Sequence record: OR805293.1
Direction: 5' to 3' (one strand)
DNA length: 64,000 nt
This document shows positions 5,617-63,175 of the stretch, one piece after another. Below the pieces are notes generated by a model, which did not search any database, had not been told where the DNA came from, and saw only the letters and a list, made by a program, of their open reading frames with translations. Every line of letters starts with the position of its first letter. Within the stretch, counting starts at the first letter, position 1. A program made the position numbers and the translations under genes.

Positions 5617-8600
5617 ATGAGTATACAATCAGGTCCTTCTGTATTAAATCAATTTGTTCCAGATTTTCTAATAGATAGTACACCAACTAATGGTCAATTT
5701 TTAGTTTATGACGAAACTGTCCAGGCATTTGTAAATAGCACAAATCCCAGAATCGTATTAGATTCGTCTAATATATTAGACGGTTCTATAACAATTGATA
5801 AACTTGCAATATCTGGTAATAAAGTACCTGGATACGTACTAACTATAACTTCCGCAGGCGGAATGGCATTTTTACCAGTGCCTGGCAGCGGTGGCCAACT
5901 ACCTAGTCTAGATGAATTACTAGACACAAATATAGTATCTCCTACTGTAACCCAATATCTTAAATGGGACGGTTCTGCATGGGTTAATAGTAATATAACG
6001 TTAAATGATGTATCAGATGTCTCTGTTATCTCCCCTACAGCCGATGATGTATTAGCATGGGAATCAGGTTCTTGGACAAATAAGAAAATAGATTATACAT
6101 CACTAACAAACAAACCAGATTTGAGTGATGTAGTTAGATCTAGCGAATTGTCACCAGTTGCATTCAGTGGTGATTATAATGATTTAGTAAATATTCCTAG
6201 TGCAACTTCTAATACTATAGTTGGATTAACAGATGTTAACGACACTGCACTACCTAACGGATTCTTGCGCTGGAACGCAAGCGGTGATGAGGTAGAATTT
6301 ATTACTTCAATTTCTGCTACTGTAATAACCGGGTTAGCTCCGGTTGCTACTAGTGGAAATTATAATGACTTATTAGGAAAACCTAATTTGTCAGTGTATC
6401 CGCTTAGAACTGAATTTTCCACTGTTGCAACCACCGGTAATTATTCTGATTTGAACAATGTGCCTTTGACATTTGCACCAAGTGCGCATACTCACCCGGC
6501 TGCACAAATCACAGGATTAGCATCTGTAGCTACTAGCAACGATTATAACGATTTAGTTAATAAACCGACTGCGATGGCGCCAACTGCACATACGCATGCT
6601 ATATCTGATATTATAGGATTGCAAAATTCGCTAGATAGTAAGTTGACTGTTAATTTAACTACTAGACTTCCAAAAGATGTTATTTATTTTAACGGCACTT
6701 CATGGGTAAACAAGCAATTATCTTATACTGATATTTCCGGTACTCCTAACTTAGATAACTATGTTACTGATTCAGAATTATCTACTGTTGCTACAACTGG
6801 CAGATATTCTGATTTAATAAATAAACCCGAGTTAGTAGAAAATTTAAACGACTTATTAGATGTAGATGTTTCTTCTAAACAAACAGGAAACGTATTAACC
6901 TGGAACGGAACAGCATGGGTTGCTAGTGCAATAACACAAGCAAGCATAGATTGGGCTAATATAAGCAATAAACCAAGCGTTTTTAACCCCGCTGCGCATA
7001 CACACGACGTAGTAGACGTACTAGGCCTGCAAAGTTTACTAGACAGCAAACTTGACGCAAATATTGCATTCGACGGCGATTATAATAGTTTAACAAATAA
7101 ACCGGGGTTAATAGATCTTCAAGATACATTTAGTCCTGCTGTACCTAACGGATTCTTACGGTGGAATAATTTAGGTACCTTAGTTGCATATCAAGATTAC
7201 ATATATCCGCAAGATATTTCGGGATTGTCAGATGTTGCTATATCAGGTCAGTATTCGGATTTATTGGGTACTCCTTCCTTATCAACTGTTGCTATAACCG
7301 GGAGTTATAGCGACTTAATTGATGCGCCGCCTGCATTTGACGGTGATTATGATAGTTTAACAAATAAACCGTTTATTCCTACTAATTTTGATTTTAAATT
7401 TATAGGTTTAAATGATGTAAGTCCTACTGTTCAGCCTGGCGGCTATTTAAAATGGAACTTAGACGGTTCATTTGTTGTATCGTCAGCAAACATTCCTGCA
7501 ACAGATGTAGCAGGTTTATCTGTTGTGTCTACAACCGGACAATATTCGGATTTATTAGGCAAACCGTTATTAGCTACAGTTTCTTCGTCGGGTAGTTATA
7601 CTGATTTAATAAATATTCCTACTGAATTTAATCCAGCCGTACATACCCACAATATAGCAGACATATCCGGATTACAGGCAGCCCTGGACAATAAATTAAA
7701 TACATCTGATGCATTTAGTGGTGATTATAATGATCTAACTAATGCACCTACTAATAGTTCATATTCATTAGTGGGTTTATCAGATACTAATTCTGTACCT
7801 GTTGCAAACGGATTCTTACGCTGGAATGCATCTGGAAGTAGTGTTGAATATATTCAAACAATTCCTGTAAATGCAATAACTGGATTGGCTCCTGTTGCAT
7901 CATCTGGCCAGTATGCAGATTTGCAAGGAACACCGGATTTATCTGACTATGTTTTATCTGTATCATTGGCTGACATAGCTACAACTGGAGAATATTCAGA
8001 TTTAATAAATGCACCTGATTTAAGTGTGTATGCTAATAAAACTGATCTGTCAGATGTAGCTACAACAGGACAATATTCGGATTTATTGGGTATTCCTACA
8101 CAATTTACACCGACAGTTCATGTCCATAACGTTTCTCAAATAAGTGGATTAGCTACTGTTGCTACTAGCGGAAGTTATAATGATTTATCTAATAAACCGT
8201 CGTTTGCTAATGTTGCAACTACAGGCAGCTATGATGATCTAAACAATAAACCATCCATACCTACTAATGGCAGTTTTAGTTTACTTGGGTTAAATGATAC
8301 AAATAATACGCCAGTTGCAGATGGTATATTGCGTTGGAATTCCAGTGCAAATCAGGTAATATATGCAAATACAATCGATGCACAATCTGTTTCTGGATTA
8401 GCTACTGTTGCAACTATAGGTAAACTATCTTCACTAAGTGATGTAGATTTAATAGGTTTGAACCAGAATGAAATATTGCAATGGAACGGTTCTGCATGGG
8501 TACCTGTACCTTATAATCCTAATCAAATACAAGCCTACATAGAGAGCGGAAATACAAAAGTTTCTACTAACGATATTTTAGATAGCATTGTTCTAACAGC

Positions 8601-21751: not shown

Positions 21752-21918
21752 AATGAACAATACATACACAGTTTTAACCATTCGGGGTTTTGGTAGAACT
21801 TAAATAGAATACCCAAGCCCAGACCAGGCTTAAGTATTTTTAATTAATAGCTGACAGTCACACATACCATTGTATCACATATAGCTACTTGGTGCAAGAA
21901 TACAAGTCGGAATTTGTT

Positions 21919-21944
21919 AGCTGACCCGTTTGGGTCAGCTCTTT
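21919..21944 (+). terminator. GC-rich hairpin / terminator
   Basis: agctgaccc-gttt-gggtcagct-cttt. Confidence 0.6.
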
Positions 21945-21958
21945 AATTGGATTAGACA

Positions 21959-22531
21959 ATGAGCATACTTACTTCTATATTAAATAATACCTTAAATTCA
22001 GTAGTGTTTGTTTATGGTAGAATGAATCCCCCTACAATAGGGCACGGAAAAGTTATATCAGAAATGCTAAAGATAGCAAAAGAATATAATGCTGCGCATT
22101 GTGTGTTTTTGTCTCATTCTTCTGGAAATAAAAAAAATCCATTACTTTGGGAAGAAAAAGTATCATATATGAAAATGTTTTTTCCCGGGGTAAATATTAA
22201 CGAATCTAAAATAAATAATCCGTTTTCTGCATTAGATTTACTTTCGAAAAAATATAAACACGTAACCTTTATTGCAGGAAGTGATAGATTAGAAGATTAC
22301 AAGAGAAATATGCCTGCATATGCAAAAAGTATAGGCATAGAATTAGATATAATATCGTCTGGTAATAGACTAGAAGAGAGTACTTCTATAGAGGGTGTAA
22401 GTGCGTCTAAAGCAAGAAAATTAGTCTTAGAAAACAACTTTGAACTATTTTCTGAATTAATACCATCTGACGATATTGCAGAAAAAAGAAATTTATTTTT
22501 GCTGCTTCAAACTAGATTAATGGATAATTAA
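21959..22531 (+). CDS. Cytidylyltransferase-like (HxGH) nucleotidyltransferase
   Basis: GRMNPPTIGH, AGSDR and SASKAR motifs typical of T4-like phage cytidylyltransferases. Confidence 0.8.
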   Translation: MSILTSILNNTLNSVVFVYGRMNPPTIGHGKVISEMLKIAKEYNAAHCVFLSHSSGNKKNPLLWEEKVSYMKMFFPGVNINESKINNPFSALDLLSKKYKHVTFIAGSDRLEDYKRNMPAYAKSIGIELDIISSGNRLEESTSIEGVSASKARKLVLENNFELFSELIPSDDIAEKRNLFLLLQTRLMDN

Positions 22532-22533
22532 AT

Positions 22534-23481
22534 ATGTTGAAAATAAAAGGAAGTCCATCCGTAGGCAAAATATCAGCAACAATTAATAGACCGTTTTTAA
22601 CTAAAACCTTAGTTACTACGATGCCACAAAACATTGCAAATTTTACTGCAGGATATGGTGGCGGAATGTTGCATATATTCGGGGGCGAAGCTGTTCCTAG
22701 TGTAGGCCAAATACAAATATATAGACGATACAATATAGCAACTAATACTTGGTTAAGTCCTAGCGGAAACATAGGAGCCTGGGCATGGGGAGGAGGCGGC
22801 TATTACAATGGAAGTTTTTGGGCGCTGTGTGGTTCTAACAATGGATATAATACTTCGTATTTTCAGATAAACCCTTCCACTGCAACAGGTACACGATATA
22901 CAGATATGGCCGGCGGTTCTAGAGGACAAGGAAGAACCGCATCAGTAGATAATCTAAACGTATTTGTTATAGGAGGTATTGGGCAAAATAATATAACAAA
23001 TGCATTGTGTTATAGATTTAATGCTAGTACAAGAGCATGGACAGTAAGAACAAGTATGCCATCGCCAAGAAATGGTCATACCATAGGATCGTATAACGGG
23101 AAAATATATGTACTAGGTGGCTGGAACGAAACATCAAACAACCTTTCAGACGTTCTAGAATACAACATATCTACTAATACGTGGACAACTTTACCCACTA
23201 CAATACCCGGAGCACCTTCTAGCTGGTTCGGCGGGTTTGTATATAAACAATATGCTGTATACGGCGCGTCATCATCTTCTAATACGCTTTTATTTAAAAT
23301 ATTAGATTTAAATAAAATGACATGGGAAATTTTAGATACTGGGTTGCCTCGCCGCTGGTCTGCAGAATATGTAGTTACAGAAACCGGTGTATATATGATA
23401 GGCGGTAGTAGTTCTTATCCCGGCGCTGCCAACTATTTTACTGCCCCTAGATATAACGAAATATATTTCTTCAAAGGTTAA
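22534..23481 (+). CDS. Kelch-repeat beta-propeller protein
   Basis: Repeated GG...Y/W units, e.g. MPSPRNGHTIGSYNGKIYVLGG...VLEYNISTNTW. Confidence 0.8.
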   Translation: MLKIKGSPSVGKISATINRPFLTKTLVTTMPQNIANFTAGYGGGMLHIFGGEAVPSVGQIQIYRRYNIATNTWLSPSGNIGAWAWGGGGYYNGSFWALCGSNNGYNTSYFQINPSTATGTRYTDMAGGSRGQGRTASVDNLNVFVIGGIGQNNITNALCYRFNASTRAWTVRTSMPSPRNGHTIGSYNGKIYVLGGWNETSNNLSDVLEYNISTNTWTTLPTTIPGAPSSWFGGFVYKQYAVYGASSSSNTLLFKILDLNKMTWEILDTGLPRRWSAEYVVTETGVYMIGGSSSYPGAANYFTAPRYNEIYFFKG

Positions 23482-25803: not shown

Positions 25804-28215
25804 ATGTACATCGATATTTTCGAAGATAAGAAAAATGAAATACTTCTAGTTGCAGAACGATCTGCAGGCAAACGAATATACAAACAATACCCTATAGATC
25901 ATACATATTACATATTAGATGCAAACGGACCGTATAAAGATATATTCGGTAATAATGCTAAAGCAATTAAGCCATCTAGCATAAATGAAAAAATGACTCA
26001 AATGAAAATGCTAGATTTTTCGCAAACGTGCGAAATAGACGTCAGGCCAGAATTTAGATGCCTGGAAGTAAACTATAAGAATGCACCTATGCCAGATTTA
26101 CATGTTGCATTCTTCGATATCGAGACCGCGTTTGATCAAAAACGCGGTTATGCCGACCCGGCCGATCCTTTTAATCCCATTATATCAATATCTGTATATT
26201 TGCAATGGATGCAGCAAATGGTTTGCTTAGCATTAGCACCGGAGACTATATTACCAGAAGATGCACAACGCATAGCATCAGAAGTAGGCGAAACAATTAT
26301 ATGTAAAAATGAAAAAGAAATGCTAAGTATGTTTATTGACTTAGTAGAAGATGCAGATATTTTATCAGGTTGGAACTCAGAACGTTTCGATATTCCTTAT
26401 ACTTTTAACAGAATTGTAAAATTATTAGGTAAGAATGAACTAAGAAAATTATGCCTTTGGAATCTTATGCCCAAGAAGCGCAATATTGAACAAGAAGGCG
26501 GCAGTAGTTTTGTTACATTCGAAACGTTTGGTAGAATACATTTAGATTATCTTCAATTATATAAAAAATATAATTACGAAGAACGTCATAGTTACTCGTT
26601 AGATTCTATTTCGGAAATTGAACTAGGTGAACGAAAAGTTCCATACAACGGAACATTAGACAAACTTTATAAATATGATTTTAAAAAGTTTTTAGAATAT
26701 AACATTCAAGATACTCGACTCCTAGATAAGTTAGATAGAAAATTAAAATATATAGATCTAGCTTCCACTATTGCACATAGTAATTGCATTCCTATCCCTA
26801 CAGTTATGGGTGCAGTAGCTACAACCGAACAAGCAATTATAATCGAAGCACATAATAACGGCATGGTAGTGCCATCTAGGCAACGTTTTAAAAATAATGA
26901 TACACTTAAAGCTGCAGGCGGCTGGGTAGCATATCCTAAAGTAGGACTGCATAGAGATATTGGCTCCAGTGACTTAAATTCTCTGTATCCTTCTGTGTTA
27001 AGGGCACTAAACATGAGCCCAGAAACTATTATAGGACAAATTCGGTTAACACTTACTAACCCTGCAATCGAAGAATGGTGTGCAAAAGGCGGAACAAAAC
27101 ATACATTTGCTGCATGGTGGAACGATAGGTTTACCACTTTAGAAATGGAATATGTGTTAAACAAAGACAGGGGTACTATATTAACGTTAGATATGGCAGA
27201 CGGGCGCTCGTTTGAACTGTCAGGTGCCGAAATATACGAATTAGTATTCAACAGTGGTCAGAATTGGCATATCAGTGCTAACGGAACTATATTTACACAA
27301 GACAGAGCAGGTGTAATTCCGTTACTACTTACAAGATGGTATGCAGAACGTAAAGGGATGCAGAAAATTGCATCAGATTATAATTCTTTAGATAAAGAAC
27401 ACCATAGCGACAAAACTGTATTTTTAGAAGATAAATCGGTATTAGATGGAATATGCGTAGGCGAAGTTGAATTAGCAGACCATTATAATATTAATGATGT
27501 ATATGTTGCAGCTACATTAAAAAATCTTGTCGAATCAAAAAATTGGCAAGAAGTAGCAATATATATGAAAAAGTATGGATTAGAAGTATCGTCTGACAAT
27601 TCAATTGTTATGTCAGATTCCCATATGCAAACCGAATATTACGAATATTGGGATAAAGCCCAGTTAGTTCGTAAAATTGGATTGAACAGCTTATATGGCG
27701 GACTACTTAACGAACATTCTAGATTCTACGATAAAAGACTAGGACAGAGTACTACACTCACAGGGCGCTGTATCACTAGACATATGGCATCTAAAACAAA
27801 CGAAATGTTCACTGGCATTTACGATCACGAAGGCGATTGTGTAATTTATGGCGATACAGATAGTGTAGATGGATCAACTATCCTAAATACTTCTCTAGGT
27901 AAAATAACTATAGAAGAGTTGTTTAATGTGTCTGACAAGCATGTAGTTCATGCAGAAAAAGAATTTGCTTCGAATGAAGATGTTATGGTAATGTCGTGGG
28001 ACAATTCTGCAAAACAACCATATATGGGGCATATAAACTATGTGTACCGCCACGAAGTAGAAAAAGAGTTATTCGAAATAGAAGACAACAACGGAAATAA
28101 AGTTATTGTAACCGAAGATCATTCTATTATGGTTATACGTAATGCAGAACTACTAGAAGTTAAGCCCGCAGAGTTAACAGACAGTGATATAATATTATCT
28201 ATTGTATATGAATAA
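25804..28215 (+). CDS. polB: Family B DNA polymerase, N-terminal part fused to split-intein N fragment
   Basis: Exo I FFDIET, Exo II GWNSERFDIPY, Exo III YNIQD, motif A SDLNSLYPS, motif B KIGLNSLYG, motif C truncated YGDTD followed by intein sequence; ATG 25804 has AGGA RBS. Confidence 0.95.
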   Translation: MYIDIFEDKKNEILLVAERSAGKRIYKQYPIDHTYYILDANGPYKDIFGNNAKAIKPSSINEKMTQMKMLDFSQTCEIDVRPEFRCLEVNYKNAPMPDLHVAFFDIETAFDQKRGYADPADPFNPIISISVYLQWMQQMVCLALAPETILPEDAQRIASEVGETIICKNEKEMLSMFIDLVEDADILSGWNSERFDIPYTFNRIVKLLGKNELRKLCLWNLMPKKRNIEQEGGSSFVTFETFGRIHLDYLQLYKKYNYEERHSYSLDSISEIELGERKVPYNGTLDKLYKYDFKKFLEYNIQDTRLLDKLDRKLKYIDLASTIAHSNCIPIPTVMGAVATTEQAIIIEAHNNGMVVPSRQRFKNNDTLKAAGGWVAYPKVGLHRDIGSSDLNSLYPSVLRALNMSPETIIGQIRLTLTNPAIEEWCAKGGTKHTFAAWWNDRFTTLEMEYVLNKDRGTILTLDMADGRSFELSGAEIYELVFNSGQNWHISANGTIFTQDRAGVIPLLLTRWYAERKGMQKIASDYNSLDKEHHSDKTVFLEDKSVLDGICVGEVELADHYNINDVYVAATLKNLVESKNWQEVAIYMKKYGLEVSSDNSIVMSDSHMQTEYYEYWDKAQLVRKIGLNSLYGGLLNEHSRFYDKRLGQSTTLTGRCITRHMASKTNEMFTGIYDHEGDCVIYGDTDSVDGSTILNTSLGKITIEELFNVSDKHVVHAEKEFASNEDVMVMSWDNSAKQPYMGHINYVYRHEVEKELFEIEDNNGNKVIVTEDHSIMVIRNAELLEVKPAELTDSDIILSIVYE
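27862..28215 (+). mobile_element. Split intein N fragment (117 aa, Ser1, no cysteines)
   Basis: SVDGSTIL (block A) directly after YGDTD; INYVYRH; VIVTEDHS (block B TxxH); VKPAEL; then stop. Confidence 0.93.
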
Positions 28216-29890
28216 AGAATATTATCAGTCATACGCAAAAGAATTAAAAAAGAATAATAAGAAAGAATACAATCGTATTCTTTCTTTGTATGAGCCCGTA
28301 TTTGATAAATGGGTTGCATTCAAGTATTATATAGAAGGAATATCGCCGCCTGTATGTAAAGAATGTGGTAATAGAATAACTGTTTCGGCAAAACAAGCAG
28401 AATATCACACAGAATGCAAATATAATAAACACAAGTATTCATTTGATAAATTTATAAAATGCATAGATGATGACCAATACATATATTGTGTGTGGAATGG
28501 ATATATTCCGACATCTGACAATATAACATACAGATGCACTAAACACGGCATAATTGTTCAAAAACTTAGTTCTAGACTAAAAGGTCACAAATGCCAAAAA
28601 TGTTCAGCTGAGCGTAAAGTAAGTCTAGATAACTTTAATAACTGGAAAACGCAGTGTTCTAAAATACATAATAATTTTTATGATTATTCTGTATCTACTG
28701 ATTTTACATTCTTAACAAAAGATGTATCTATTAAATGTCCAATACATGGAATATTTAAACAAAAAGCAAACGTCCATCAATCAGGTCACGGTTGTAAAAA
28801 ATGCTCGTTCGAAGCTATCGGTCATAAATTATCATATGACACCGATTCTTTTATAGAAAGAAGTAATAACGTTCATAATAATTTTTATGACTATACCAAA
28901 ACTATATACACTAACATTAGAGATAAAGTTGTTATAACATGTCCGATACACGGCGACTTTAACCAGATAGCATATTATCATACTGCCGGGCACGGTTGTC
29001 AGAAATGCGGTTTAGATAAAGTAGCAGAAACTACATATAGATCTAAGGCAGAAATAGAAATATTCGATTTAGTTAAATCTTATTGCTCAGATACAATTCA
29101 TTCATACAATAAATTTGGGTTCGAATTAGACATATATGTTCCTAGTAAAAATCTTGCAATAGAATATAATGGACTTTATTGGCATTCTTCTAAACACATA
29201 GAAACTGATCAAAAATATAAAACATACCATCTTGATAAAACCACTACATGTGAACAAAATAATATCCAATTATTACACATTTTCGACAACGAATGGCATA
29301 CTAAAAAAGATATATGGATCTCGGTAATAAAAAATAAACTAGGTTTATCTAATAAAATATATGCAAGAAAAACAGAAATTAAAGAAGTTAAGTTCGATGA
29401 TGCAAAGCAATTCGCCGAAACGAATCATTTGCAAGGTCATGCACAATTTCGGCATGCATACGGATTGTATTATTCGGATCAATTAGTTTCTTTATTAACA
29501 ATTGCAAAGCCCAGGTTTAATAAAAATGCAAACTGGGAAATAGTAAGATTTTGTAACCTAAATAACACAAGTGTAATAGGTGGGTTTTCTAAATTATTAA
29601 AGGTAGTTTCTTGTAATTTTACAGGCAAGATAGTATCATATGCAAATAGGCGCTGGTCCGTAGGAAACGTTTATGAAAAAAACGGATTTGCTAAAACTTC
29701 AATAATAGCTCCTGGATTTTATTATACTGACTTCAAAGATACATATAATAGGTTATCTTTCTCTAAAGACAAGGCAAAAGTTAAATTAAAAAATTATAAT
29801 AATTCAGTTAGCGTAGTAGAAAATATTTACGCAAACGGATATGGCAGGATTTGGGATTCAGGAAATATTGTTTATACAAAGGATTTATAA
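28208..29890 (+). CDS. Free-standing homing endonuclease (Zn-finger repeats, Vsr/EDxHD-like nuclease, Mom/GNAT-like C-terminal domain)
   Basis: CxxHG...H..GHGCxxC repeats; ELDIY...AIEYNGLYWHS; WEIVRF...IVSYANRRWS.G.VY..NGF; sits between the intein halves. Confidence 0.8.
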   Translation: MNKEYYQSYAKELKKNNKKEYNRILSLYEPVFDKWVAFKYYIEGISPPVCKECGNRITVSAKQAEYHTECKYNKHKYSFDKFIKCIDDDQYIYCVWNGYIPTSDNITYRCTKHGIIVQKLSSRLKGHKCQKCSAERKVSLDNFNNWKTQCSKIHNNFYDYSVSTDFTFLTKDVSIKCPIHGIFKQKANVHQSGHGCKKCSFEAIGHKLSYDTDSFIERSNNVHNNFYDYTKTIYTNIRDKVVITCPIHGDFNQIAYYHTAGHGCQKCGLDKVAETTYRSKAEIEIFDLVKSYCSDTIHSYNKFGFELDIYVPSKNLAIEYNGLYWHSSKHIETDQKYKTYHLDKTTTCEQNNIQLLHIFDNEWHTKKDIWISVIKNKLGLSNKIYARKTEIKEVKFDDAKQFAETNHLQGHAQFRHAYGLYYSDQLVSLLTIAKPRFNKNANWEIVRFCNLNNTSVIGGFSKLLKVVSCNFTGKIVSYANRRWSVGNVYEKNGFAKTSIIAPGFYYTDFKDTYNRLSFSKDKAKVKLKNYNNSVSVVENIYANGYGRIWDSGNIVYTKDL

Positions 29891-30145
29891 ATGCATAATC
29901 TAACAAAACACCTTTTAGGTGTATTTTCTGCAAAAACAGAAGACGAAGAATATAAAAGTGCAAAAAGAGCGCTAGAAGAATTAAACAAAAATATAAAAGA
30001 AAGAGATCCTAATAAATTTAATGTGTCTTTAGGAAAGGTATCTAAAGTAACTAATTTAGGAAAAAAGAAACAATATGTATACGATATAGGGATGAAAAAT
30101 CCCGATAATCCGTATTTCTTTGGAAATAATATATTAGTTCACAAT
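29891..30145 (+). mobile_element. Split intein C fragment (85 aa incl. ~44-aa N-terminal leader)
   Basis: YVYDIGM (block F) ... YFFGNNILVHN (block G, penultimate His, terminal Asn), followed by Ser+1. Confidence 0.93.
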
Positions 30146-31030
30146 TCTTGCTATTTTACTGCATGGCCTGCAGTAAAAGACCTTGTAGAATCTGGCGAAA
30201 TGGAATGGGATAAAGATACTGTCATTAAATTATACGACAACGTTTCGTCGCAAGTAAGTGATACATTTCCGGAATTTTTAAAACAAACATTTAATGTTCC
30301 ATACAAAAACTCAGAAGGTGTTATTAAGTCGGGTAGGGAAATTGTAGCTACTTCTGGTCTTTTTATTAAAAAGAAACGTTATGCTGCTATGATGTATGAT
30401 AAAGAAGGTACTAGATACGACGACGAAAACAGCCCAGGAAAAGTAAAAGCAATGGGTCTGGACCTACGTCGGTCAGATACGCCTAAATTTGTCCAAACAT
30501 TCCTTATGGAAATTCTAGTTATGGTGCTAACACATAAAACAGAAGATGAAGTAATAGAATATATTCGAGAATTTAAAAAAGAATTTAATAAAATGAAACC
30601 GTGGGAAAAGGGAATGCCAAAAGGCGTCAACGGTATCAGTACATATGAAGATAAATTAGAAGAACACATGAATAAAAAGTTAGCAGGAAGAGAGTCTAGA
30701 ATCACTGTCCCCGGTCACGTGTCTGCTGCGATGAATTGGAATAAACTAAAGCTTATCAATAAAGACCTACATACTCCTAAAATCTCAGATGGTCAAAAAT
30801 GTGTTGTTTGTTATTTAAAAGAAACCGCAGACAATCATTTTACTAGTATAGCATATCCTGTAGATGAATTGCACTTACCAGAATGGTTTACGTCTTTGCC
30901 ATTTGATGAAGATTTAATGAGAGAAAAAGTAGTAGATAACAAAGTTAAGAACCTTTTAGGTATTCTAAAATGGGATTTTAGTAAAACAGAAGAAGCTGCT
31001 GCACACTTTGATTCGCTGTTTGGTTGGTAA
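29891..31030 (+). CDS. polB: Split-intein C fragment fused to C-terminal part of family B DNA polymerase
   Basis: After HN: SCYF completes YGDTD|SCYF; KKKRYA and KAMGLDLRRSDTP thumb motifs. Confidence 0.95.
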   Translation: MHNLTKHLLGVFSAKTEDEEYKSAKRALEELNKNIKERDPNKFNVSLGKVSKVTNLGKKKQYVYDIGMKNPDNPYFFGNNILVHNSCYFTAWPAVKDLVESGEMEWDKDTVIKLYDNVSSQVSDTFPEFLKQTFNVPYKNSEGVIKSGREIVATSGLFIKKKRYAAMMYDKEGTRYDDENSPGKVKAMGLDLRRSDTPKFVQTFLMEILVMVLTHKTEDEVIEYIREFKKEFNKMKPWEKGMPKGVNGISTYEDKLEEHMNKKLAGRESRITVPGHVSAAMNWNKLKLINKDLHTPKISDGQKCVVCYLKETADNHFTSIAYPVDELHLPEWFTSLPFDEDLMREKVVDNKVKNLLGILKWDFSKTEEAAAHFDSLFGW

Positions 31031-32193: not shown

Positions 32194-33816
32194 ATGAAAA
32201 ATTTATCAAACAGTCAAAAAGATTATGCGATCTATTTGCCTGCAATTAGTGGGTTTTACACAAAACAATTAGACAGTTCTATTAACGATCCGTCTACAAG
32301 AAAAATACCTAGCTTTCCTAATGGATATAATACTCTTAATTTTTTAGATCCATCTAGCGATACATTCTTTTACGGGTATGGGTTATATTCTGCAGGCCAT
32401 GCAGAACTGTCTTTATCTAGAACTGATGCAAAAGAATGGATGATCCAAGCCAGGGACAAAACACAAACAACAGTTATTGCAGACTCGGGTGGTTTCCAGG
32501 TAGCTACCGGTGTAATTAAATTAAACTGGGATGATTTTAAAGGAGCTAGCGGAGATAAAATAAGAAATGAAATTTTAAAATGGTGTGAACATACCGCCGA
32601 CTGGTCAATGACACTAGATGTTCCTGCGTTTGCTGCTACTCCTCCGTACAGTTCAAAAACCGGTCTTAATAAATTTGAAGATACATTAGATTATTCTCTT
32701 CATAATTTACATTATTACATGAAGAACAGAACTCCTGGCGCAACTAAATTCCTTAGTGTATTATCGGGATCAGATGTAGATACATCTAAAATTTGGTACG
32801 ACAACGTAAAAGCATTTAGTGACCCAGCTAAAGTAGTAGAAATGGGATATCCGGCTAGTCATACACTCGAAGGGTATGCATTTGCTGGTATAAACATGAG
32901 AAATATGTATTGTGCTCTTTCTCGATTCTTAGATTTAATAGATGATAATATTATTTCAGATAAAAACTGGATACACTTTCTCGGACTAGGCAGGACTGAT
33001 TGGGCTTGTTTCTTAACATCTATTCAGCGAAATATAAGAAAACATTATAATCCCAATATTAACATAAGTTTTGACGCAGCTTCTCCGTTTGTTTCTGTGG
33101 CATACGGTCTTGCATATAACTATAATTATTTTAATCCCAAACGGTGGGGATATAATATGGATTCTGCTCCGGACAGCAGAGAGTTTAGTGATAAGGATAT
33201 TCCTATGCCGTTTATGAGTCCTATTATGGAAAAATTATCATTAAAAGACATATGTCCATATCACAATGGTTATGGTATAATAAATGGTGTTAAAAATGCA
33301 AACTTTACAAAAGAAGATGTAGAAACTGCTCTCAAAGAAGGAAAAGATGCAGAATACGTGCCACCGAGTGCAAATAAAAATGGTAAAGTAGGTAAAACCA
33401 GTTGGGATTCACTTAGTTACTTATTAATAATGAATCACAATGTTTACAATCATATAGCTGCAATCCAAGAATCTAATAGATTAGTTGATATAGAACGGTT
33501 GCGAGTTAAAGTAGATTACCGAGATTGGACTAGAGATAAAAAGAAAGGTACTATAGAAGTAAGTAATCACGTCCCTAGTTCGATTTTATATTTTGATCAT
33601 TTTGTAGAAGTATTGCTAGATCCGAGTACTCCTAATAAGCGACAATTATTAGAAGATTATAGACCTATGCTAGACAGCATTAGTTTCGGCAATTATAACT
33701 CAAACTCATTTAACAGTCTTTTTGATGTAGATGCTACTGCAATCGAAGATGAAAATAAATTTGCAGACATAAACGACGAAAAACTAACCGAATTAGAACA
33801 AGGATTAGACAATTAA
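32194..33816 (+). CDS. tRNA-guanine transglycosylase (TGT)-fold enzyme, probable DpdA-like DNA base-exchange protein
   Basis: ADSGGFQ, MTLDVP, HFLG, SFDAASP and HN motifs align with the TGT catalytic barrel; neighbours are preQ pathway genes. Confidence 0.75.
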   Translation: MKNLSNSQKDYAIYLPAISGFYTKQLDSSINDPSTRKIPSFPNGYNTLNFLDPSSDTFFYGYGLYSAGHAELSLSRTDAKEWMIQARDKTQTTVIADSGGFQVATGVIKLNWDDFKGASGDKIRNEILKWCEHTADWSMTLDVPAFAATPPYSSKTGLNKFEDTLDYSLHNLHYYMKNRTPGATKFLSVLSGSDVDTSKIWYDNVKAFSDPAKVVEMGYPASHTLEGYAFAGINMRNMYCALSRFLDLIDDNIISDKNWIHFLGLGRTDWACFLTSIQRNIRKHYNPNINISFDAASPFVSVAYGLAYNYNYFNPKRWGYNMDSAPDSREFSDKDIPMPFMSPIMEKLSLKDICPYHNGYGIINGVKNANFTKEDVETALKEGKDAEYVPPSANKNGKVGKTSWDSLSYLLIMNHNVYNHIAAIQESNRLVDIERLRVKVDYRDWTRDKKKGTIEVSNHVPSSILYFDHFVEVLLDPSTPNKRQLLEDYRPMLDSISFGNYNSNSFNSLFDVDATAIEDENKFADINDEKLTELEQGLDN

Positions 33817-34877
33817 TGAAAGTTATAATAATCCCAATCGAATCAATAGAAACTCGGTATACGTCAGAATGGAATACGTTTCTTAAACCGCAACTAGAAA
33901 AGTATATAAACGAATCCGGTCTCGATGCAGAAATAGTTCAAATTGATGTAGATTATGTTGACGAAGGCACCTCTGCGGGTGCCTTCCTTAACTTTGCAAA
34001 TACAAACATATTCAAATGCAATCAATTCATTAAATTAGCAAGTATAATAGAAACTTTAAACGATAACGATGTTGTTCTCTATACAGACGCATGGAATCCC
34101 ACAGTAGTTCAACTAAATTACATGCGATCGTTAATGAATAAAAAATTTAAAATAATGGGGTTGTGGCACGCCGGTTCGTATGATCCGCATGATTTTTTAG
34201 GAAGGCACTTTGATAAAAATTGGTCATATGAATTTGAAAGATCGTTATATAATATATATGATGTGAATTTCTATGCAACTAATTTTAGTAAAGATCTCAT
34301 GATAGATAACCTTTTTGGTAAAACAGCTAACATAAACAGACACGATATAGTAGGTTGGCCAATGGAATATTTAGTTGACCAACTTACACCTTCTACTAAC
34401 AAGACAGATACTGTATTATTTCCTCATCGAATTTCTCCGGAAAAACAACCAAATATATTTAAAAAATTAAGATCATTACTTCCTAACTACGAGTTTGTTT
34501 TTGCACAAGAAACTAAATTATCAAAGGCAGAATACCATACACTTCTTAAACGTTCTAAAATTGTCTTTTCGGCTTCGTTGCAGGAAACATTGGGTATAGG
34601 TTTCTACGAAGGTGCATTAGTCGGTGCAATTCCATTATTGCCTGACCGATTGTCTTATAAAGAAATGACAGAAAATGTAAAAAACAGAAATTTGTATGTA
34701 TATCCAAATGAATGGACTATTTCGGAAAATCTGGCAGACCTAAAAAATTTAGTTACCCTAATAGATTATACTATGCGTAATTATAATTTTATAGTAGAAG
34801 AAATGAAACTTAATTTACTGCCCGAATTAAACAAATATTATAACGGAACAGAGTTGTATAAAAGAATTTTAAAATAA
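33816..34877 (+). CDS. GT-B (GT4-like) glycosyltransferase
   Basis: HRISPEKQP and VFSASLQETLGIGFYEG..VGAIPLLPD (ExxGxxxxE motif); TAATG overlap with the TGT-like gene. Confidence 0.8.
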   Translation: MKVIIIPIESIETRYTSEWNTFLKPQLEKYINESGLDAEIVQIDVDYVDEGTSAGAFLNFANTNIFKCNQFIKLASIIETLNDNDVVLYTDAWNPTVVQLNYMRSLMNKKFKIMGLWHAGSYDPHDFLGRHFDKNWSYEFERSLYNIYDVNFYATNFSKDLMIDNLFGKTANINRHDIVGWPMEYLVDQLTPSTNKTDTVLFPHRISPEKQPNIFKKLRSLLPNYEFVFAQETKLSKAEYHTLLKRSKIVFSASLQETLGIGFYEGALVGAIPLLPDRLSYKEMTENVKNRNLYVYPNEWTISENLADLKNLVTLIDYTMRNYNFIVEEMKLNLLPELNKYYNGTELYKRILK

Positions 34878-36649: not shown

Positions 36650-37522
36650 ATGAAACACAGATATACTGAAAAGTTTTTCTCAGTCCAGGGAGAAAGCCTA
36701 CATACCGGAAAACTATGCACTTGGCTTAGATTTTTCGGATGTTCGTTACAATGTAGGGGCTTTGGACAAAAAGAACCTGGAAATCCCGAAACATGGGTAG
36801 AACAACGACCGGATTTAATAGATGTAACAAACATTACAGATTATAAACAATTACCGACTCCTAAGTATGGATGTGATTCAGACTATTCTGTATTTGCTAA
36901 ATTTAAACATCTTGCAACAGAAGTCGATCCTGTTGTAGTTGCAAATGAAATAAAACAATTAATTCCTAGTAAAACATTTGGTAAAAAAATAGGTCATGTA
37001 TTTACGGGCGGAGAACCGTTAGTAAACCAAGAATCTATAGTAGATATAGTAAATTATTGGATAGATACTAATGATTATCCTGCATGGATAGGAATAGAAA
37101 CAAATACAACTAGACCGTTAGAAAAATGCTTAATCGATTTAGTTAACAGATGTAAATCGATTGGTGTGCAATTTTATTTTTCTATGTCACCCAAACTACT
37201 TCATGTAGCAGGTGAACAACCCAAACGAGCTATCCATATAAATTTAATGAAGGAATATATAGATATTGCACCGGATAGCTATCTAAAATTTGTAGTAAAT
37301 GAAGATCAGCGATCGTGGGATCAAGCAAAAAGTATAGTAGACACATTAAATGCTGACGGGTATTTACCAGATGTGTGGGTTATGCCAGTTGGAGGCATTT
37401 ATTCCCAACAAACAGACCCAGTAATTGGAAGACTTGCAGATAAAGCTATCTTCGAATACGAATGGAATGTTAGTTTACGTGTTCACGTATTAACCTGGGG
37501 TGACGATCAACTAGGTAGGTAA
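36650..37522 (+). CDS. queE: 7-carboxy-7-deazaguanine synthase (radical SAM)
   Basis: EKFFSVQGE, RFFGCSLQC...(insertion)...GCDSDYS, FTGGEP, IETN, SPKL, C-terminal RVHVLTW. Confidence 0.85.
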   Translation: MKHRYTEKFFSVQGESLHTGKLCTWLRFFGCSLQCRGFGQKEPGNPETWVEQRPDLIDVTNITDYKQLPTPKYGCDSDYSVFAKFKHLATEVDPVVVANEIKQLIPSKTFGKKIGHVFTGGEPLVNQESIVDIVNYWIDTNDYPAWIGIETNTTRPLEKCLIDLVNRCKSIGVQFYFSMSPKLLHVAGEQPKRAIHINLMKEYIDIAPDSYLKFVVNEDQRSWDQAKSIVDTLNADGYLPDVWVMPVGGIYSQQTDPVIGRLADKAIFEYEWNVSLRVHVLTWGDDQLGR

Positions 37523-38554: not shown

Positions 38555-39540
38555 TGTCTAAAACTTATATTTTAATCGATACATTTAACATGTTTCATAG
38601 AGCAAAACATGTAATCAGGTCCTCCTCGTTAGATGAAAAAGTAGGCATGTGTCTTCATGTAATGTTTAACAGTATACGCAAAGTATACAGAGACCATTCT
38701 GCAGATCATGCTGTGTTTTGCATAGAAGGCAAATCTTGGCGGAAGGACTTTTATAAAGAATATAAGTTCAACCGAACAGCAGCTAGAATGGCAAGAACAG
38801 AAGCTGAAATCGAAGAAGATGCTGCTTTAATGGAAGCATATAACGATTTAATTACGTTCATTAATGATAAAACAAATTCTAGCGTACTACATCACCATAA
38901 AGCAGAAGCAGATGATATGATAGCTACTTGGATTCAAAATAATCCAAATGATAATCATATTATTGTTAGTTCAGACAGCGATTTTTTCCAGCTATTAGCA
39001 CCTAACGTTAAAATATATAATGGAATTACAGAACAACTAATCACATTAGAAGGTTTCTTTGATAATAAAGGCAAACCTGTAATTGATAATAAAACAAAGA
39101 AACCAAAAGTGGCTCCTGATCCTAAATGGTTATTATTTGAAAAATGCATTAGGGGAGATAAATCTGATTTTATTTTTGCGGCGTATCCAGGTGCAAGAGA
39201 AACTAGTTCTAAAAATAAAGTAGGCATGCGTGAAGTATTTGCCGATATGGATAATAAAGGTTACGCATGGAATAATTTTATGTTGACAAAAATTACAGAT
39301 TCTGCTGGTAATGAATTTGTTGTTCACGATAAGTACGAATTTAACAAAACACTAATTGACTTAACTTGTCAGCCAGATGATCTAAAAACAGAATTTAAAA
39401 CAGTCGCAGATGTGGCTCGTAATAAACCGCCCGTATCTAACGTAGGCATCCATTTTTTAAAATTCTGTAATAGATGGGCACTAGAGCAAATCTCTAAATA
39501 TCCGGACGAATTTGCAAAACTTCTTAATGCTAAACCATAA
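38554..39540 (+). CDS. rnh: T4 RNase H / FEN-1-like 5'-3' nuclease
   Basis: ILIDTFN, SWRKDFY..YK, EADDMIA, SSDSDFFQL, GDKSD motifs. Confidence 0.88.
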   Translation: MSKTYILIDTFNMFHRAKHVIRSSSLDEKVGMCLHVMFNSIRKVYRDHSADHAVFCIEGKSWRKDFYKEYKFNRTAARMARTEAEIEEDAALMEAYNDLITFINDKTNSSVLHHHKAEADDMIATWIQNNPNDNHIIVSSDSDFFQLLAPNVKIYNGITEQLITLEGFFDNKGKPVIDNKTKKPKVAPDPKWLLFEKCIRGDKSDFIFAAYPGARETSSKNKVGMREVFADMDNKGYAWNNFMLTKITDSAGNEFVVHDKYEFNKTLIDLTCQPDDLKTEFKTVADVARNKPPVSNVGIHFLKFCNRWALEQISKYPDEFAKLLNAKP

Positions 39541-42532: not shown

Positions 42533-43084
42533 ATGAATAGTATAAAAATGAAATATTACACTAAATGGTTTTTGATGACACACAGAAATAAAATGTATGA
42601 TTTTAAGAATCTATCATTTTATATATTACTAGTAGGAAATGTAGTTTTTAATCCTATTATAGCGAGTTTCTTAATTATTCTCAAAATAATGCAATTATTG
42701 CAAAATAAACCAGAATATTTAGATACTATCCCTGTGCTTAATGAAGTATTTTATATGTTTGTTGCTGAGTTAGTTTCTATATCTTATCGGTTTATAAATA
42801 AAACACCCGATTATGAAATATTTCATTCTTCGTTTAACAAAAGAAAACCAAAACAACATAAAAATAATACATGTAAAAAAAGAAATGATCGCTGTATCGG
42901 GGAAGAAACAATTAGCAATAAAAGATCATCATTTTATAATACAGGTGTTAAACTATATAAAGACAGCAAAGATAAAAGAAAACGATATGCTTATCCTAGG
43001 CAATCCGGTCCGCTGAGCCCCTGCTGGTATCCTACATTTAGACTTCCTAAATATTTTAAGAGAAAAAAGAAAAAAGGGCTATAA
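42533..43084 (+). CDS. Hypothetical membrane protein with basic C-terminus
   Basis: Hydrophobic segment(s) followed by a K/R-rich tail. Confidence 0.55.
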   Translation: MNSIKMKYYTKWFLMTHRNKMYDFKNLSFYILLVGNVVFNPIIASFLIILKIMQLLQNKPEYLDTIPVLNEVFYMFVAELVSISYRFINKTPDYEIFHSSFNKRKPKQHKNNTCKKRNDRCIGEETISNKRSSFYNTGVKLYKDSKDKRKRYAYPRQSGPLSPCWYPTFRLPKYFKRKKKKGL

Positions 43085-48472: not shown

Positions 48473-48483
48473 TCGTAGGTTAA

Positions 48484-48517
48484 AACAAAAAAGGGGCTTA
48501 TAAGCCCCTTTTTTGTT
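48484..48517. terminator. 34-bp perfect palindrome / terminator
   Basis: aacaaaaaaggggcttataagccccttttttgtt. Confidence 0.9.
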
Positions 48518-48574
48518 GACTAGTTTTAACTACTTAAAGCGCTGTAGCATAGCTGTACATAAGCGCTAAATTAG

Positions 48575-48653
48575 CGCAAATTTGCGTGTTTTTATGCGTT
48601 ACAATACATAGCTAATACTACGCATGCAAAACGCGCTATAGCGCAAATTTGCG
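48575..48653. repeat. Two copies of the 12-bp palindrome CGCAAATTTGCG (48575-48586, 48642-48653) within 21-bp direct repeats
   Basis: tagcgcaaatttgcgtgtttt occurs twice, 67 bp apart. Confidence 0.85.
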
Positions 48654-48753
48654 TGTTTTAAGCACATCTACTATGCTTTTTATTTTGCATTGTATTTAAT
48701 GCACAGGGACAGTATTGTATGCTTGTTTGTGTCATATAAGACAATAAAATGTT

Positions 48754-48996
48754 ATGTTACATTATCTTCCAGTTATACTATTCGTTTATGTTATAGGAAA
48801 CATATTATCATTGTTTTTATACAATGTAGTATCATACAGCACACTATTTCCATATAGTATGTTACACAAACAAAACCACAAGAAAACTCTGTTTCATAAA
48901 TTTATAAAAATGTGGTGGTTTTCCTACTTAAACATTATTGTACTCAGTTGTGCTTGCATATATGTAATAGGCAAAAAATATATAAAGAGAATTTGA
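48754..48996 (+). CDS. Small hydrophobic hypothetical protein
   Basis: 80 aa, two hydrophobic segments, no Asp or Glu. Confidence 0.45.
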   Translation: MLHYLPVILFVYVIGNILSLFLYNVVSYSTLFPYSMLHKQNHKKTLFHKFIKMWWFSYLNIIVLSCACIYVIGKKYIKRI

Positions 48997-49053: not shown

Positions 49054-49080
49054 AATAAAAGGGCTTAACGCCCTTTTATT
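49054..49080. terminator. Bidirectional terminator between convergent genes
   Basis: aataaaagggc-ttaac-gcccttttatt. Confidence 0.85.
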
Positions 49081-49088
49081 TCAATCAA

Positions 49089-55281: not shown

Positions 55282-55900
55282 TTGCGTAAGAAATGTATAT
55301 ACGATAGTGCTATATGTATATACAGACAAGTGGCTCTGTTCCATTATTGGATATTGGTAGTAGAAACTATCCCCATCGTGCTGTTAATGTAGTTCCGATA
55401 GTGTCGGGTTAACGTTTTAACAGTTATTTAAATTATGATTTTGGGTGCCACAGAGATTGTACTTACTAAAAGGACTTAGTAAGAACCGCATATAATCTCG
55501 AAACTTGTGTAGGATGTTGGTCTAACCACGGCATAGAATATATGCCTCAACTACTACACGGAAAGGATGATGCTCTGGTTGAAACAGAGTTTCTATAAAT
55601 CTTTCAGTATAGATTCCGCATGACTGAAAGTTGAAACACCAACATCAATAGACTATAGTTTTTGTTAGTGTGGCTATAGTTTATTCCGGCATTGAAAGTA
55701 TATACAGTGATGCGAGACAGTAAGCATTAGTAGCAACTGTATATATGAGTAAGAGGATGCGTTTACAATGAGGAATTACCTATCGGTGCCCGCCTCAGGG
55801 ATTGCACTTCCCAACGTACACTAAACTTCGTACCATACCGAAACATACGTTTCTGTTATTACGATTTCCTTCCCAAACGGGGAGGAAATCTTCTCCGCCC
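55282..55900 (+). ncRNA. Candidate large structured non-coding RNA (~620 nt)
   Basis: No ORF of 60 aa or more, raised GC, at least 9 stems with G-U wobbles, dedicated promoter; family not identified. Confidence 0.6.
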
Positions 55901-56122
55901 GAATATCATAAGATCAAAAGCATTAATAATTAATATATAAAATTCGTTTAATTAGTTATTAAGTATATGAGTTGTAGTTTACGAAAACGAATATACTTAA
56001 TAACTACCAGTGAAGCTTGCTTCGCTGTTTAAAATTGCAATTTGTATTTTCAATTTTATATTTTGAAATGTGTTTTTGAAAATCAATCTATAAAATATAA
56101 TTTTAAATATTATTTTTAAATG

Positions 56123-62346: not shown

Positions 62347-62635
62347 TTATAGCAAAGTATATGAACCGAAAGGCGCACTATATAGAATTCGTCGCATTTC
62401 TGACGGTGCATTTAGCACAGGGTCTTCCAGTCCGGCGTTTGTAACTTCTGGTCCGGGAAAAGTATTCAATACTTTAGGTAAACTTAGATCTCATCTTACT
62501 ACTATTCGTAATAACCCGGTTTTACAAGACATATACAACGAATGTGAAATTGTTCAGTATGTAGAAGCTGACCAGCCAACATACACTCTAGCTGAACACA
62601 CAGAATTACTTATACTTAAAAAGTTAACACAATAA
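62330..62635 (+). CDS. Hypothetical protein
   Basis: 101-aa ORF overlapping the upstream gene. Confidence 0.65.
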   Translation: MTKKINYSKVYEPKGALYRIRRISDGAFSTGSSSPAFVTSGPGKVFNTLGKLRSHLTTIRNNPVLQDIYNECEIVQYVEADQPTYTLAEHTELLILKKLTQ

Positions 62636-62698
62636 CGCGCTTTACTGCGCGTTAATTTGCGCGTATGCTGCAAAAACATGTAACACTAGAGCTTATAT

Positions 62699-63175
62699 AT
62701 GCTTATGCTTAAAAAGCTGTATAACGCAATTTATGCGTTCCTTAACGAACTTGCTTATATAAAATATATAAGATTCTATGTCTTCTTTAAATGTGTTCAT
62801 AAGCATCATGTATCGGAAATACTTCTGTTAAGTAATCTAGCAGGTACGACTATAGGAGCATATAGATTTGAACGTCTCGGAAGCATGGATTATTGCACTA
62901 TATCGATTGACATGCCACTCGACGAGGATTATTTTATTGCCTGTAATACAAAAGGAATTATTTCTGTAGCAAAATGTAATCTCATATCAATGAATTTTTA
63001 TGATTTTGGTACACAATTATCAAACTATTACTTTTTTAAATACGACAATACATCGAATGGTTCGTTTTTTGTGTATCCATCCAAAAATTATTTAGTACAT
63101 CCAGAAGTAATATCTTATATAAAGAAATATAATAATGAGAGTTTATATAAAAGAACAACGTATTTGCCGGGGTAA
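62699..63175 (+). CDS. Hypothetical protein
   Basis: 158-aa ORF. Confidence 0.55.
   Translation: MLMLKKLYNAIYAFLNELAYIKYIRFYVFFKCVHKHHVSEILLLSNLAGTTIGAYRFERLGSMDYCTISIDMPLDEDYFIACNTKGIISVAKCNLISMNFYDFGTQLSNYYFFKYDNTSNGSFFVYPSKNYLVHPEVISYIKKYNNESLYKRTTYLPG

Follow-up and report, generated by a model that had tools for sequence, protein, structure and literature searches.

The locus studied here raises a simple question: why does a short intergenic stretch in a jumbo phage genome contain neither GA nor GG on either strand? The stretch of DNA analysed (64,000 nt, referred to below as the window) corresponds to bases 62001-126000 of Pseudomonas phage Deifobo (OR805293.1) with 100% identity. Ten further PA5oct-like jumbo phages (genus Wroclawvirus) are 98.5-99.7% identical to the window. 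We judged the island against the complete Deifobo genome (288,357 bp), in which the frequencies of GA and GG are normal (0.92 and 1.04, respectively). GA, GG, TC and CC, that is, GA and GG read on both strands, are called forbidden dinucleotides below, and in the genome ranking their expected counts were corrected for local composition and global dinucleotide bias.

An exact count of positions 48520-48666 gave 27 G and 29 C and not a single GA, GG, TC or CC (AA 16, AC 9, AG 9, AT 11, CA 10, CG 10, CT 9, GC 19, GT 8, TA 20, TG 8 and TT 17). The original prediction had described exactly this absence, with base counts (roughly 25 G and 25 C) that were slightly too low. The maximal clean run, 48519-48667, is the longest of its kind in the window. 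About 27 forbidden dinucleotides were expected in it (27.8 from the base composition of the run itself and 26.4 in the corrected genome ranking), and with the run's own composition the probability of finding none is about 1e-12. Only one TC (48667-68) interrupts the pattern before the next forbidden dinucleotide at 48706-08, as had also been predicted. A GG/CC-free run covers Deifobo 110508-110706, where 12.6 were expected, indicating that GA/TC and GG/CC are each absent in their own right. The genes flanking the island have observed/expected ratios of 1.0 and 1.09, and the DNA of the small downstream open reading frame is only mildly depleted (23 vs 31.9 expected; 0.72); the island is therefore sharply bounded. 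The core is identical in PA5oct (239311-239459). A blastn search of 48473-48753 against the whole genome returned only the region itself, its internal repeat and terminator look-alikes; the island sequence is unique in the genome, and a mobile or repeated element was rejected.

The features in and around the island are as follows.

48484-48517: bidirectional intrinsic terminator, a perfectly palindromic hairpin of 17+17 nt with one A-run and one T-run
48519-48667: core island of 149 nt with 38% G+C, free of GA/GG/TC/CC and strongly enriched in GC steps
48563-48592, + strand: duplicated unit, copy 1, about 30 nt, GCGCTA-AAT-TAGCGCAAATTTGCGTGTTTT, with a 12-bp palindrome at 48575-48586
48603-48631, - strand: weak candidate promoter, TTGCAT-17-TATTGT, facing the terminator
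48633-48659, + strand: duplicated unit, copy 2, without AAT, with its palindrome at 48642-48653, 67 nt downstream of copy 1
48649-48677, + strand: weak sigma-70-like candidate promoter predicted from the sequence, TTGCGT-17-TATGCT, facing the small open reading frame
48668-48706: island extension, 39 nt without forbidden dinucleotides, with one TC (48667-68) between it and the core
48754-48996, + strand: orphan hydrophobic open reading frame of 80 aa, EST35_0341 in the PA5oct annotation
49056-49084: terminator-like hairpin, a GC stem between an A-run and a T-run, read from the letters and not flagged by the terminator scan

The terminator ends the upstream VWA/metallopeptidase gene and forms the left border of the island; RNA-seq contigs of this highly expressed gene stop at about 48513-48515. 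The hairpin at 49056-49084 closes a 0.54-kb unit that contains the island. In the unstranded RNA-seq contigs, the depth over the island was 0-300, compared with thousands in the flanking genes. One run had a contig start at 48556, another left the island uncovered and had a contig start at 48712, and two runs had a single low-depth contig spanning 48486-49620. This low depth may come from minus-strand read-through. The best sigma-70 weight-matrix score in the island was 7.75 (p 0.76 against 300 composition-matched sequences), a scan for consensus promoters gave zero matches inside it, and the -10 element of the plus-strand candidate reads TATACT in MIJ3 and 30-3.

The duplication of the 30-nt unit is not random: a 21-nt exact repeat such as that in the island appeared in 0 of 3000 composition-matched simulations. 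Both units were invariant across the six genomes aligned, and together these two properties make a binding site at the units possible. The palindromes are a different matter, since 26% of composition-matched sequences contained a perfect 12-bp palindrome, and 6- and 8-mer palindromes are about as numerous as expected. We therefore rejected the palindromes as a repressor operator (dimer site); inverted repeats at this level are produced by the restricted vocabulary. A structured RNA was rejected as well, since the best Rfam scores of the island were 20-27 bits (45-100 needed), all driven by the terminator hairpin, and the plus-strand fold was ordinary (z -1.6); the minus-strand value (z -5.4) is due to the terminator included in the folded stretch. 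A replication origin, for which the GC skew was inspected, was discarded, as the skew only tracks gene orientation. The 80-aa open reading frame may not be a real gene: a search for homologues outside PA5oct-like phages found none, and by eye about half of its substitutions among relatives are non-synonymous. Its lack of Asp and Glu, to which the original prediction had drawn attention, was confirmed but adds little, given the mild depletion of its DNA and its orphan status, and we set it aside as a clue. In IMG/VR and metagenomes, the upstream VWA gene has relatives with only 39-45% identity and another gene order, which are uninformative on deeper conservation.

We then placed the island among all clean runs of the Deifobo genome, the scan against controls that had been proposed for it. 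The longest runs free of GA/GG/TC/CC measure 218, 160, 149, 143, 105, 104, 86, 86+50 and 80 nt. The longest clean run in each of 30 genome-size first-order Markov simulations was 58-102 nt, and after correction nine runs had at least 11 forbidden dinucleotides expected, among which island 48519-48667 ranks second (26.4). Chance was rejected on both grounds, the simulated maxima of 58-102 nt against observed runs of 149-218 nt and the composition-corrected expectations. The genome thus holds about ten short non-coding GA/GG-free stretches, at least nine of them beyond chance. One further member lies in the window.

62604-62739: second island of the window, 86 + 50 nt with one GA between, score 24, with 14.0 forbidden dinucleotides expected for the first part

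This second island is located between two plus-strand genes and contains GCGC-rich words and an AACGCA...TGCGTT inverted repeat.

The class of dinucleotides that is missing is itself unusual. Among 45 strand-symmetric dinucleotide class pairs, GA/TC + GG/CC was the most extreme (log10 E -11.6), and four separate islands head that ranking. Over 1299 nt of islands taken together, GA/TC was found 0 times (139 expected) and GG/CC 0 times (78 expected), the mirror class AG/CT 118 times (139 expected), and GC 129 times (38 expected). The absence of GA with AG at a normal level speaks for a directional reader of sequence and against bulk properties, for example purine content or stiffness. The idea that GA/GG has been eroded throughout non-coding DNA was rejected, since 31 other non-coding gaps (135-472 nt) had observed/expected ratios of mostly 0.8-1.0. 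The stretch at about 55324-55942 of the window, which corresponds to ncRNA004 of PA5oct (246116-246734), a weakly expressed 'lncRNA' within a large divergent non-coding region, contains no island (observed/expected 0.95 over Deifobo 117330-117801). Just upstream of the 186k island, Deifobo 186088-186217 contains a direct repeat of about 17 nt (AATAATTCTTATTTGCA-like) in four copies at a spacing of about 30 nt. Further copies, single or palindromic, border the 179k and 191k islands; these repeats look like iterons or a regulator array.

Some annotations elsewhere in these genomes were recorded in passing. The DNA polymerase (window 25804-31030) is annotated in two parts, 25804-28215 and 29891-31030, with a homing endonuclease open reading frame (28208-29890) between them, which looks like a split or an intein/intron-like arrangement. 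A 'CRISPR' repeat region is annotated at Deifobo 158039-158336, near PA5oct coordinate 1, where the 39-kb terminal repeat starts. In the early region of MIJ3, a phage-encoded DksA-like RNA polymerase-binding factor is annotated (182308-182538). It is noteworthy in view of the dependence of Paride on RpoS and (p)ppGpp in dormant hosts.

The island region 48519-48706 was aligned in six genomes, and all islands were compared with MIJ3 and PA5oct. The region has five variable sites, none of them within the two repeat units. Relatives carry 23 island substitutions, of which one creates GA/GG; 9.2 would be expected had changes of the same types fallen at random (P(<=1) = 1.3e-5, with two double changes counted as independent events). 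One island change is a TA-to-GC double substitution, either single step of which would yield a forbidden dinucleotide. These results indicate that the GA/GG-free state itself is maintained by selection. The original prediction, that this DNA is selected to stay unmodified, accordingly holds for the selected state: GA/GG is the top outlier class, at least nine islands share the property, and 22 of 23 substitutions leave it intact.

The avoided dinucleotides coincide with a modification context deduced independently. PA5oct DNA resists EcoRI, XbaI, BsaI and BmrI, from which a modified G at GA and/or GG has been inferred (PMC12191111). END nucleases sensing hypermodified DNA also act on PA5oct, and one of them was directed at G-modified phages only; QueE and PTPS genes have been named for PA5oct (PMC12191111). 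ApaLI, the one enzyme that does not fit the GA/GG motif, has 3 sites in the 288-kb genome, so that apparent resistance to it is uninformative, and we rejected it as a contradiction of the motif. The ApaLI palindrome (GTGCAC) is strongly under-represented in Deifobo, with 3 sites compared with 112 for BsgI (GTGCAG).

Deifobo carries the preQ0/CDG pathway genes FolE and QueD and a QueE-like gene. Pfam identified GTP cyclohydrolase I (FolE, 1e-59) and PTPS twice (QueD). The only deazaguanine-pathway gene within the window is the following.

36650-37522, + strand: QueE-like radical-SAM gene

It was found by tblastn with the CAjan and iggy QueE proteins (E 4e-5 to 9e-5), and in Pfam it had only a weak Fer4_12 match. 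With CAjan and iggy queries, tblastn gave no credible QueC, which is needed for preQ0 (best E 0.03), and no DpdA (E above 0.8), and no TGT domain was present in the 19 proteins scanned with Pfam, a part of the proteome. The DpdA-type modification originally proposed was thus not borne out at the level of genes, as the tblastn searches gave neither DpdA nor QueC and the genes in hand are FolE, two QueD and the QueE-like gene. The guanine modification reported in PA5oct-like phages is probably a 7-deazaguanine derivative. Iyer et al. credit PA5oct with five Mom-like enzymes and list an 'incorporation system' (PMC7824862); given the five Mom-like enzymes, another mark could be the relevant one. 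At a distance of 1.8 kb upstream of the QueE-like gene, window 33816-34877 has a weak match to glycosyltransferase-1 (E 1e-3), and a Kelch-repeat protein is encoded at 22534-23481. The glycosyltransferase-1-like or the Kelch-repeat protein could be relevant to a further-decorated base.

A modified guanine can matter to transcription. The RNA polymerases of E. coli and B. subtilis produced almost no transcript from templates with 7-vinyl-, 7-ethynyl- or 7-phenyl-7-deazaguanine (Raindlova et al., PMC4838386). No truncated products were seen and the block was assigned to initiation, not elongation; plain 7-deazaG was tolerated (PMC4838386). In our judgement, natural substituents (e.g. cyano, carboxy and amido) are similar in size to these blocking groups.

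Three islands are located at promoters. In PA5oct, island 8186-8271 reaches as far as the 5' end of ncRNA001 (8263-8498), and the 5' end of ncRNA002 (21951-22401) lies within island 21901-21967; ncRNA001 and ncRNA002 each account for 1-5% of phage reads. The largest island stops exactly at the first tRNA gene. The islands of ncRNA001, ncRNA002 and the tRNA cluster contain TTTACA-17-TATACT, TTTACA-17-TATTAT and two copies of TTGCAA-17-TATAAT, sigma-70-type promoters that exceed the composition expectation (p 0.02-0.03). Their -35 elements are GA-free variants of TTGACA, and the clean stretch extends from -40 or beyond to +30/+40, approximately the polymerase footprint plus leader. The GC-richer islands (136k, 148k, 186k, 169k and 48519-48706) gave no sigma-70 signal better than chance. 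Outside the islands, eleven perfect TTGACA-17-TATAAT promoters contain GA, several of them preceding replication genes, indicating that a modified G in a promoter is not generally prohibitive; the original prediction had rightly cautioned that several promoters contain GA/GG. A conserved -10 plus leader module (GTATAAT...CACA..ACAA.GCAA.ACAG) is shared by the islands of the tRNA cluster, ncRNA002 and 191k(-) (L005:12539-12756, L006:4608-4687 and L006:15138-15192), which appear to be paralogous promoter cassettes.

Taking our observations on composition, family, selection and the promoter link of three islands together with the modification context and the initiation effect known from the literature, we infer that an island without GA/GG would stay chemically ordinary DNA within an otherwise modified genome. 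On balance, we consider it probable that the island family is modification-free regulatory DNA needed for RNA polymerase or regulators. The islands occupy upstream, regulatory positions in the early, small-gene part of the genome, and they would be zones in which the host RNA polymerase holoenzyme could bind and open DNA free of bulky major-groove groups. Phage or host regulators possibly also bind inside them, and the remaining genome would be modifiable because elongation would tolerate the modification. Island 48519-48706 carries the duplicated 30-nt unit and has a strong terminator on one side and the small orphan open reading frame on the other. Its most likely role is to regulate the 0.54-kb unit, as a weak or conditional promoter combined with binding sites. 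The earlier suggestion that the island is kept so that a protein can read the DNA is partly upheld: it is biochemically plausible (PMC4838386) and three islands sit on promoters of abundant RNAs, but 48519-48706 itself contains no promoter above chance.

Several other explanations would leave a similar composition. The islands might avoid GA/GG to escape a nuclease or another GA/GG-reading factor that attacks unmodified DNA, for example a phage enzyme degrading host DNA, so that newly replicated and still unmodified regulatory DNA would be spared. Identical compositional facts apply to this explanation, and the genome contains many nucleases and homing endonucleases. Modification after replication is established for DpdA-type systems, and here it would open a vulnerable period. 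We regard this explanation as unlikely, since no GA/GG-specific nuclease is known in PA5oct-like phages, 1.3 kb protected out of 288 kb would not rescue a genome, and the explanation does not account for the link of three islands to promoters. We would give similarly low odds to the composition being a by-product of binding-site arrays or of paralogous promoter-leader cassettes (with words like TAACGCAT, GCTGTA, TTTGCR and GCGC) that happen to lack GA/GG. TAACGCA and AACGCAT are indeed enriched 35-50 fold relative to the genome and found in 7-8 of 11 islands, several islands have modules of 30-50 nt in common, and 48519-48706 contains the duplicated 30-nt unit. Against this, AT-rich promoter-type islands and GC-rich islands with unrelated sequences have the same property, and variable positions beyond the shared words stay clean too. 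The TAACGCAT copy in 48519-48706 is not conserved (G48598T in four relatives), palindromes are expected from a restricted vocabulary, and the avoided set matches the independently inferred modification context.

A demand of DNA mechanics (flexibility, curvature, easy melting or purine-pyrimidine alternation, as in unwinding elements or origins) would account for the enrichment of GC, CG, TG/CA and TA steps, and by eye the GC clusters of the duplicated units are about 10-11 bp apart between A/T tracts. Purines and pyrimidines alternate at 65% of steps (95/146), with A/T tracts interrupting throughout, which falls short of an alternating or Z-DNA-forming tract; AG/CT is at expectation although it is physically near GA/TC, which is zero. 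Long (CG)n or (CA)n runs are absent, GC skew gives no origin signal at the island, and T4 origins and early regions have no similar runs. A special conformation arising from the alternation, which had been offered as the alternative at the outset, is thus weak, and we consider mechanics a quite improbable cause. The least probable explanation in our estimation, to which we give very little credence, is a constraint on RNA, with transcribed leaders or small RNAs that need to lack GA/GG (Shine-Dalgarno-like sequences or GGAG/GA-specific RNase sites). The clean stretch does reach 30-40 nt into the leader at the ncRNA002 and tRNA promoters, and the absence of GA/GG eliminates all Shine-Dalgarno-like sites. 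The avoidance, however, is strand-symmetric and includes the non-transcribed -35 and upstream DNA, and the ordinary plus-strand fold, the lack of a matching Rfam family and the low transcript depth over 48519-48706 also speak against an RNA.

A bolder version of the modification-free reading, which we put forward as a doubtful possibility, is that the modification serves as an epigenetic timer of infection through two promoter classes, one that the phage's own mark can touch and one that it cannot. Island promoters (-35 TTGCAA or TTTACA) would be blind to modification and would fire from the injected modified genome and throughout infection. TTGACA promoters, whose -35 G is followed by A, would be weakened when the DNA is modified and dependent on its modification state, and would be active, for example, on newly replicated DNA or at incompletely modified sites. 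The same logic may extend to other GA-modifying phages such as iggy.

If the islands are modification-free regulatory DNA, hypermodified phage genomes would not be uniformly camouflaged and would carry hard-wired windows of ordinary DNA for the host machinery. Such windows would offer a route, from sequence alone, to the key regulatory DNA of modified phages and to a guess at the context of an uncharacterised modification. They would also predict weak points for restriction enzymes, CRISPR and engineered nucleases that are otherwise blocked by modification, and the effect of natural 7-deazaguanine marks on transcription would be directly testable in therapy-relevant PA5oct- and Paride-type phages.

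Neither the CAjan and iggy papers (PMC7544227 and PMC10484667) nor the literature consulted on PA5oct, Paride and jumbo phages describes motif-free islands. Like CAjan, which is modified at GA and GGC, and iggy, which is modified strictly at GA with dPreQ0 (PMC7544227 and PMC10484667), Deifobo combines an apparent G-purine context with FolE, QueD and QueE genes; unlike in these phages, DpdA and QueC were undetected in it by tblastn. The proposed comparison of islands across modified phages gave a divided answer. In the same corrected scan, CAjan had no GA-free islands, and iggy had four GA/TC-free runs with at least 11 expected, compared with one for any other class. The iggy runs measure 152-171 nt with 12-14 expected (L016:10074-10225; L015:27694-27854, 39300-39456 and 42700-42870); one lies between genes close to the right end of the genome, and two or three are in GC-rich coding DNA. 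The whole genome of Pbunavirus F8, in which T is modified at TG, contained neither TG-free nor GA/GG-free islands. The phenomenon may thus extend beyond PA5oct-like phages, and the lack of TG-free islands in F8 and of GA-free islands in CAjan indicates that the principle is not universal. Like Deifobo, T4 is an AT-rich myovirus dependent on the RNA polymerase of its host, with strong early promoters and a tRNA cluster. It modifies every C, however, and 100 kb of its genome, including the early region and the tRNA cluster, had no GA/GG-free islands (any clean run had at most 7.2 expected).

Outside this group, the islands recall the avoidance of restriction sites and other short motifs in phages, in which short words are selected against for what an enzyme does there. 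Classical restriction-site avoidance is genome-wide and directed against host enzymes; the avoidance described here is local (about 0.5% of the genome) and concerns the context of the phage's own modification. As in Dam/GATC regulation in enterobacteria (pap and oriC sequestration), a modification target in regulatory DNA would decide protein binding, although those systems use a few placed sites with switchable methylation and here whole footprints are cleared of sites. The closest parallel in form is with vertebrate CpG islands, which are likewise discrete, promoter-associated stretches, a few hundred bases long, that escape a genome-wide base modification and are visible from dinucleotide content. 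In the present case, the genome is that of a phage and the mark is, by inference, on G. CpG islands are enriched in the target, which bound factors keep unmodified, whereas in these phage islands the target dinucleotides are deleted, and the escape would be hard-wired.
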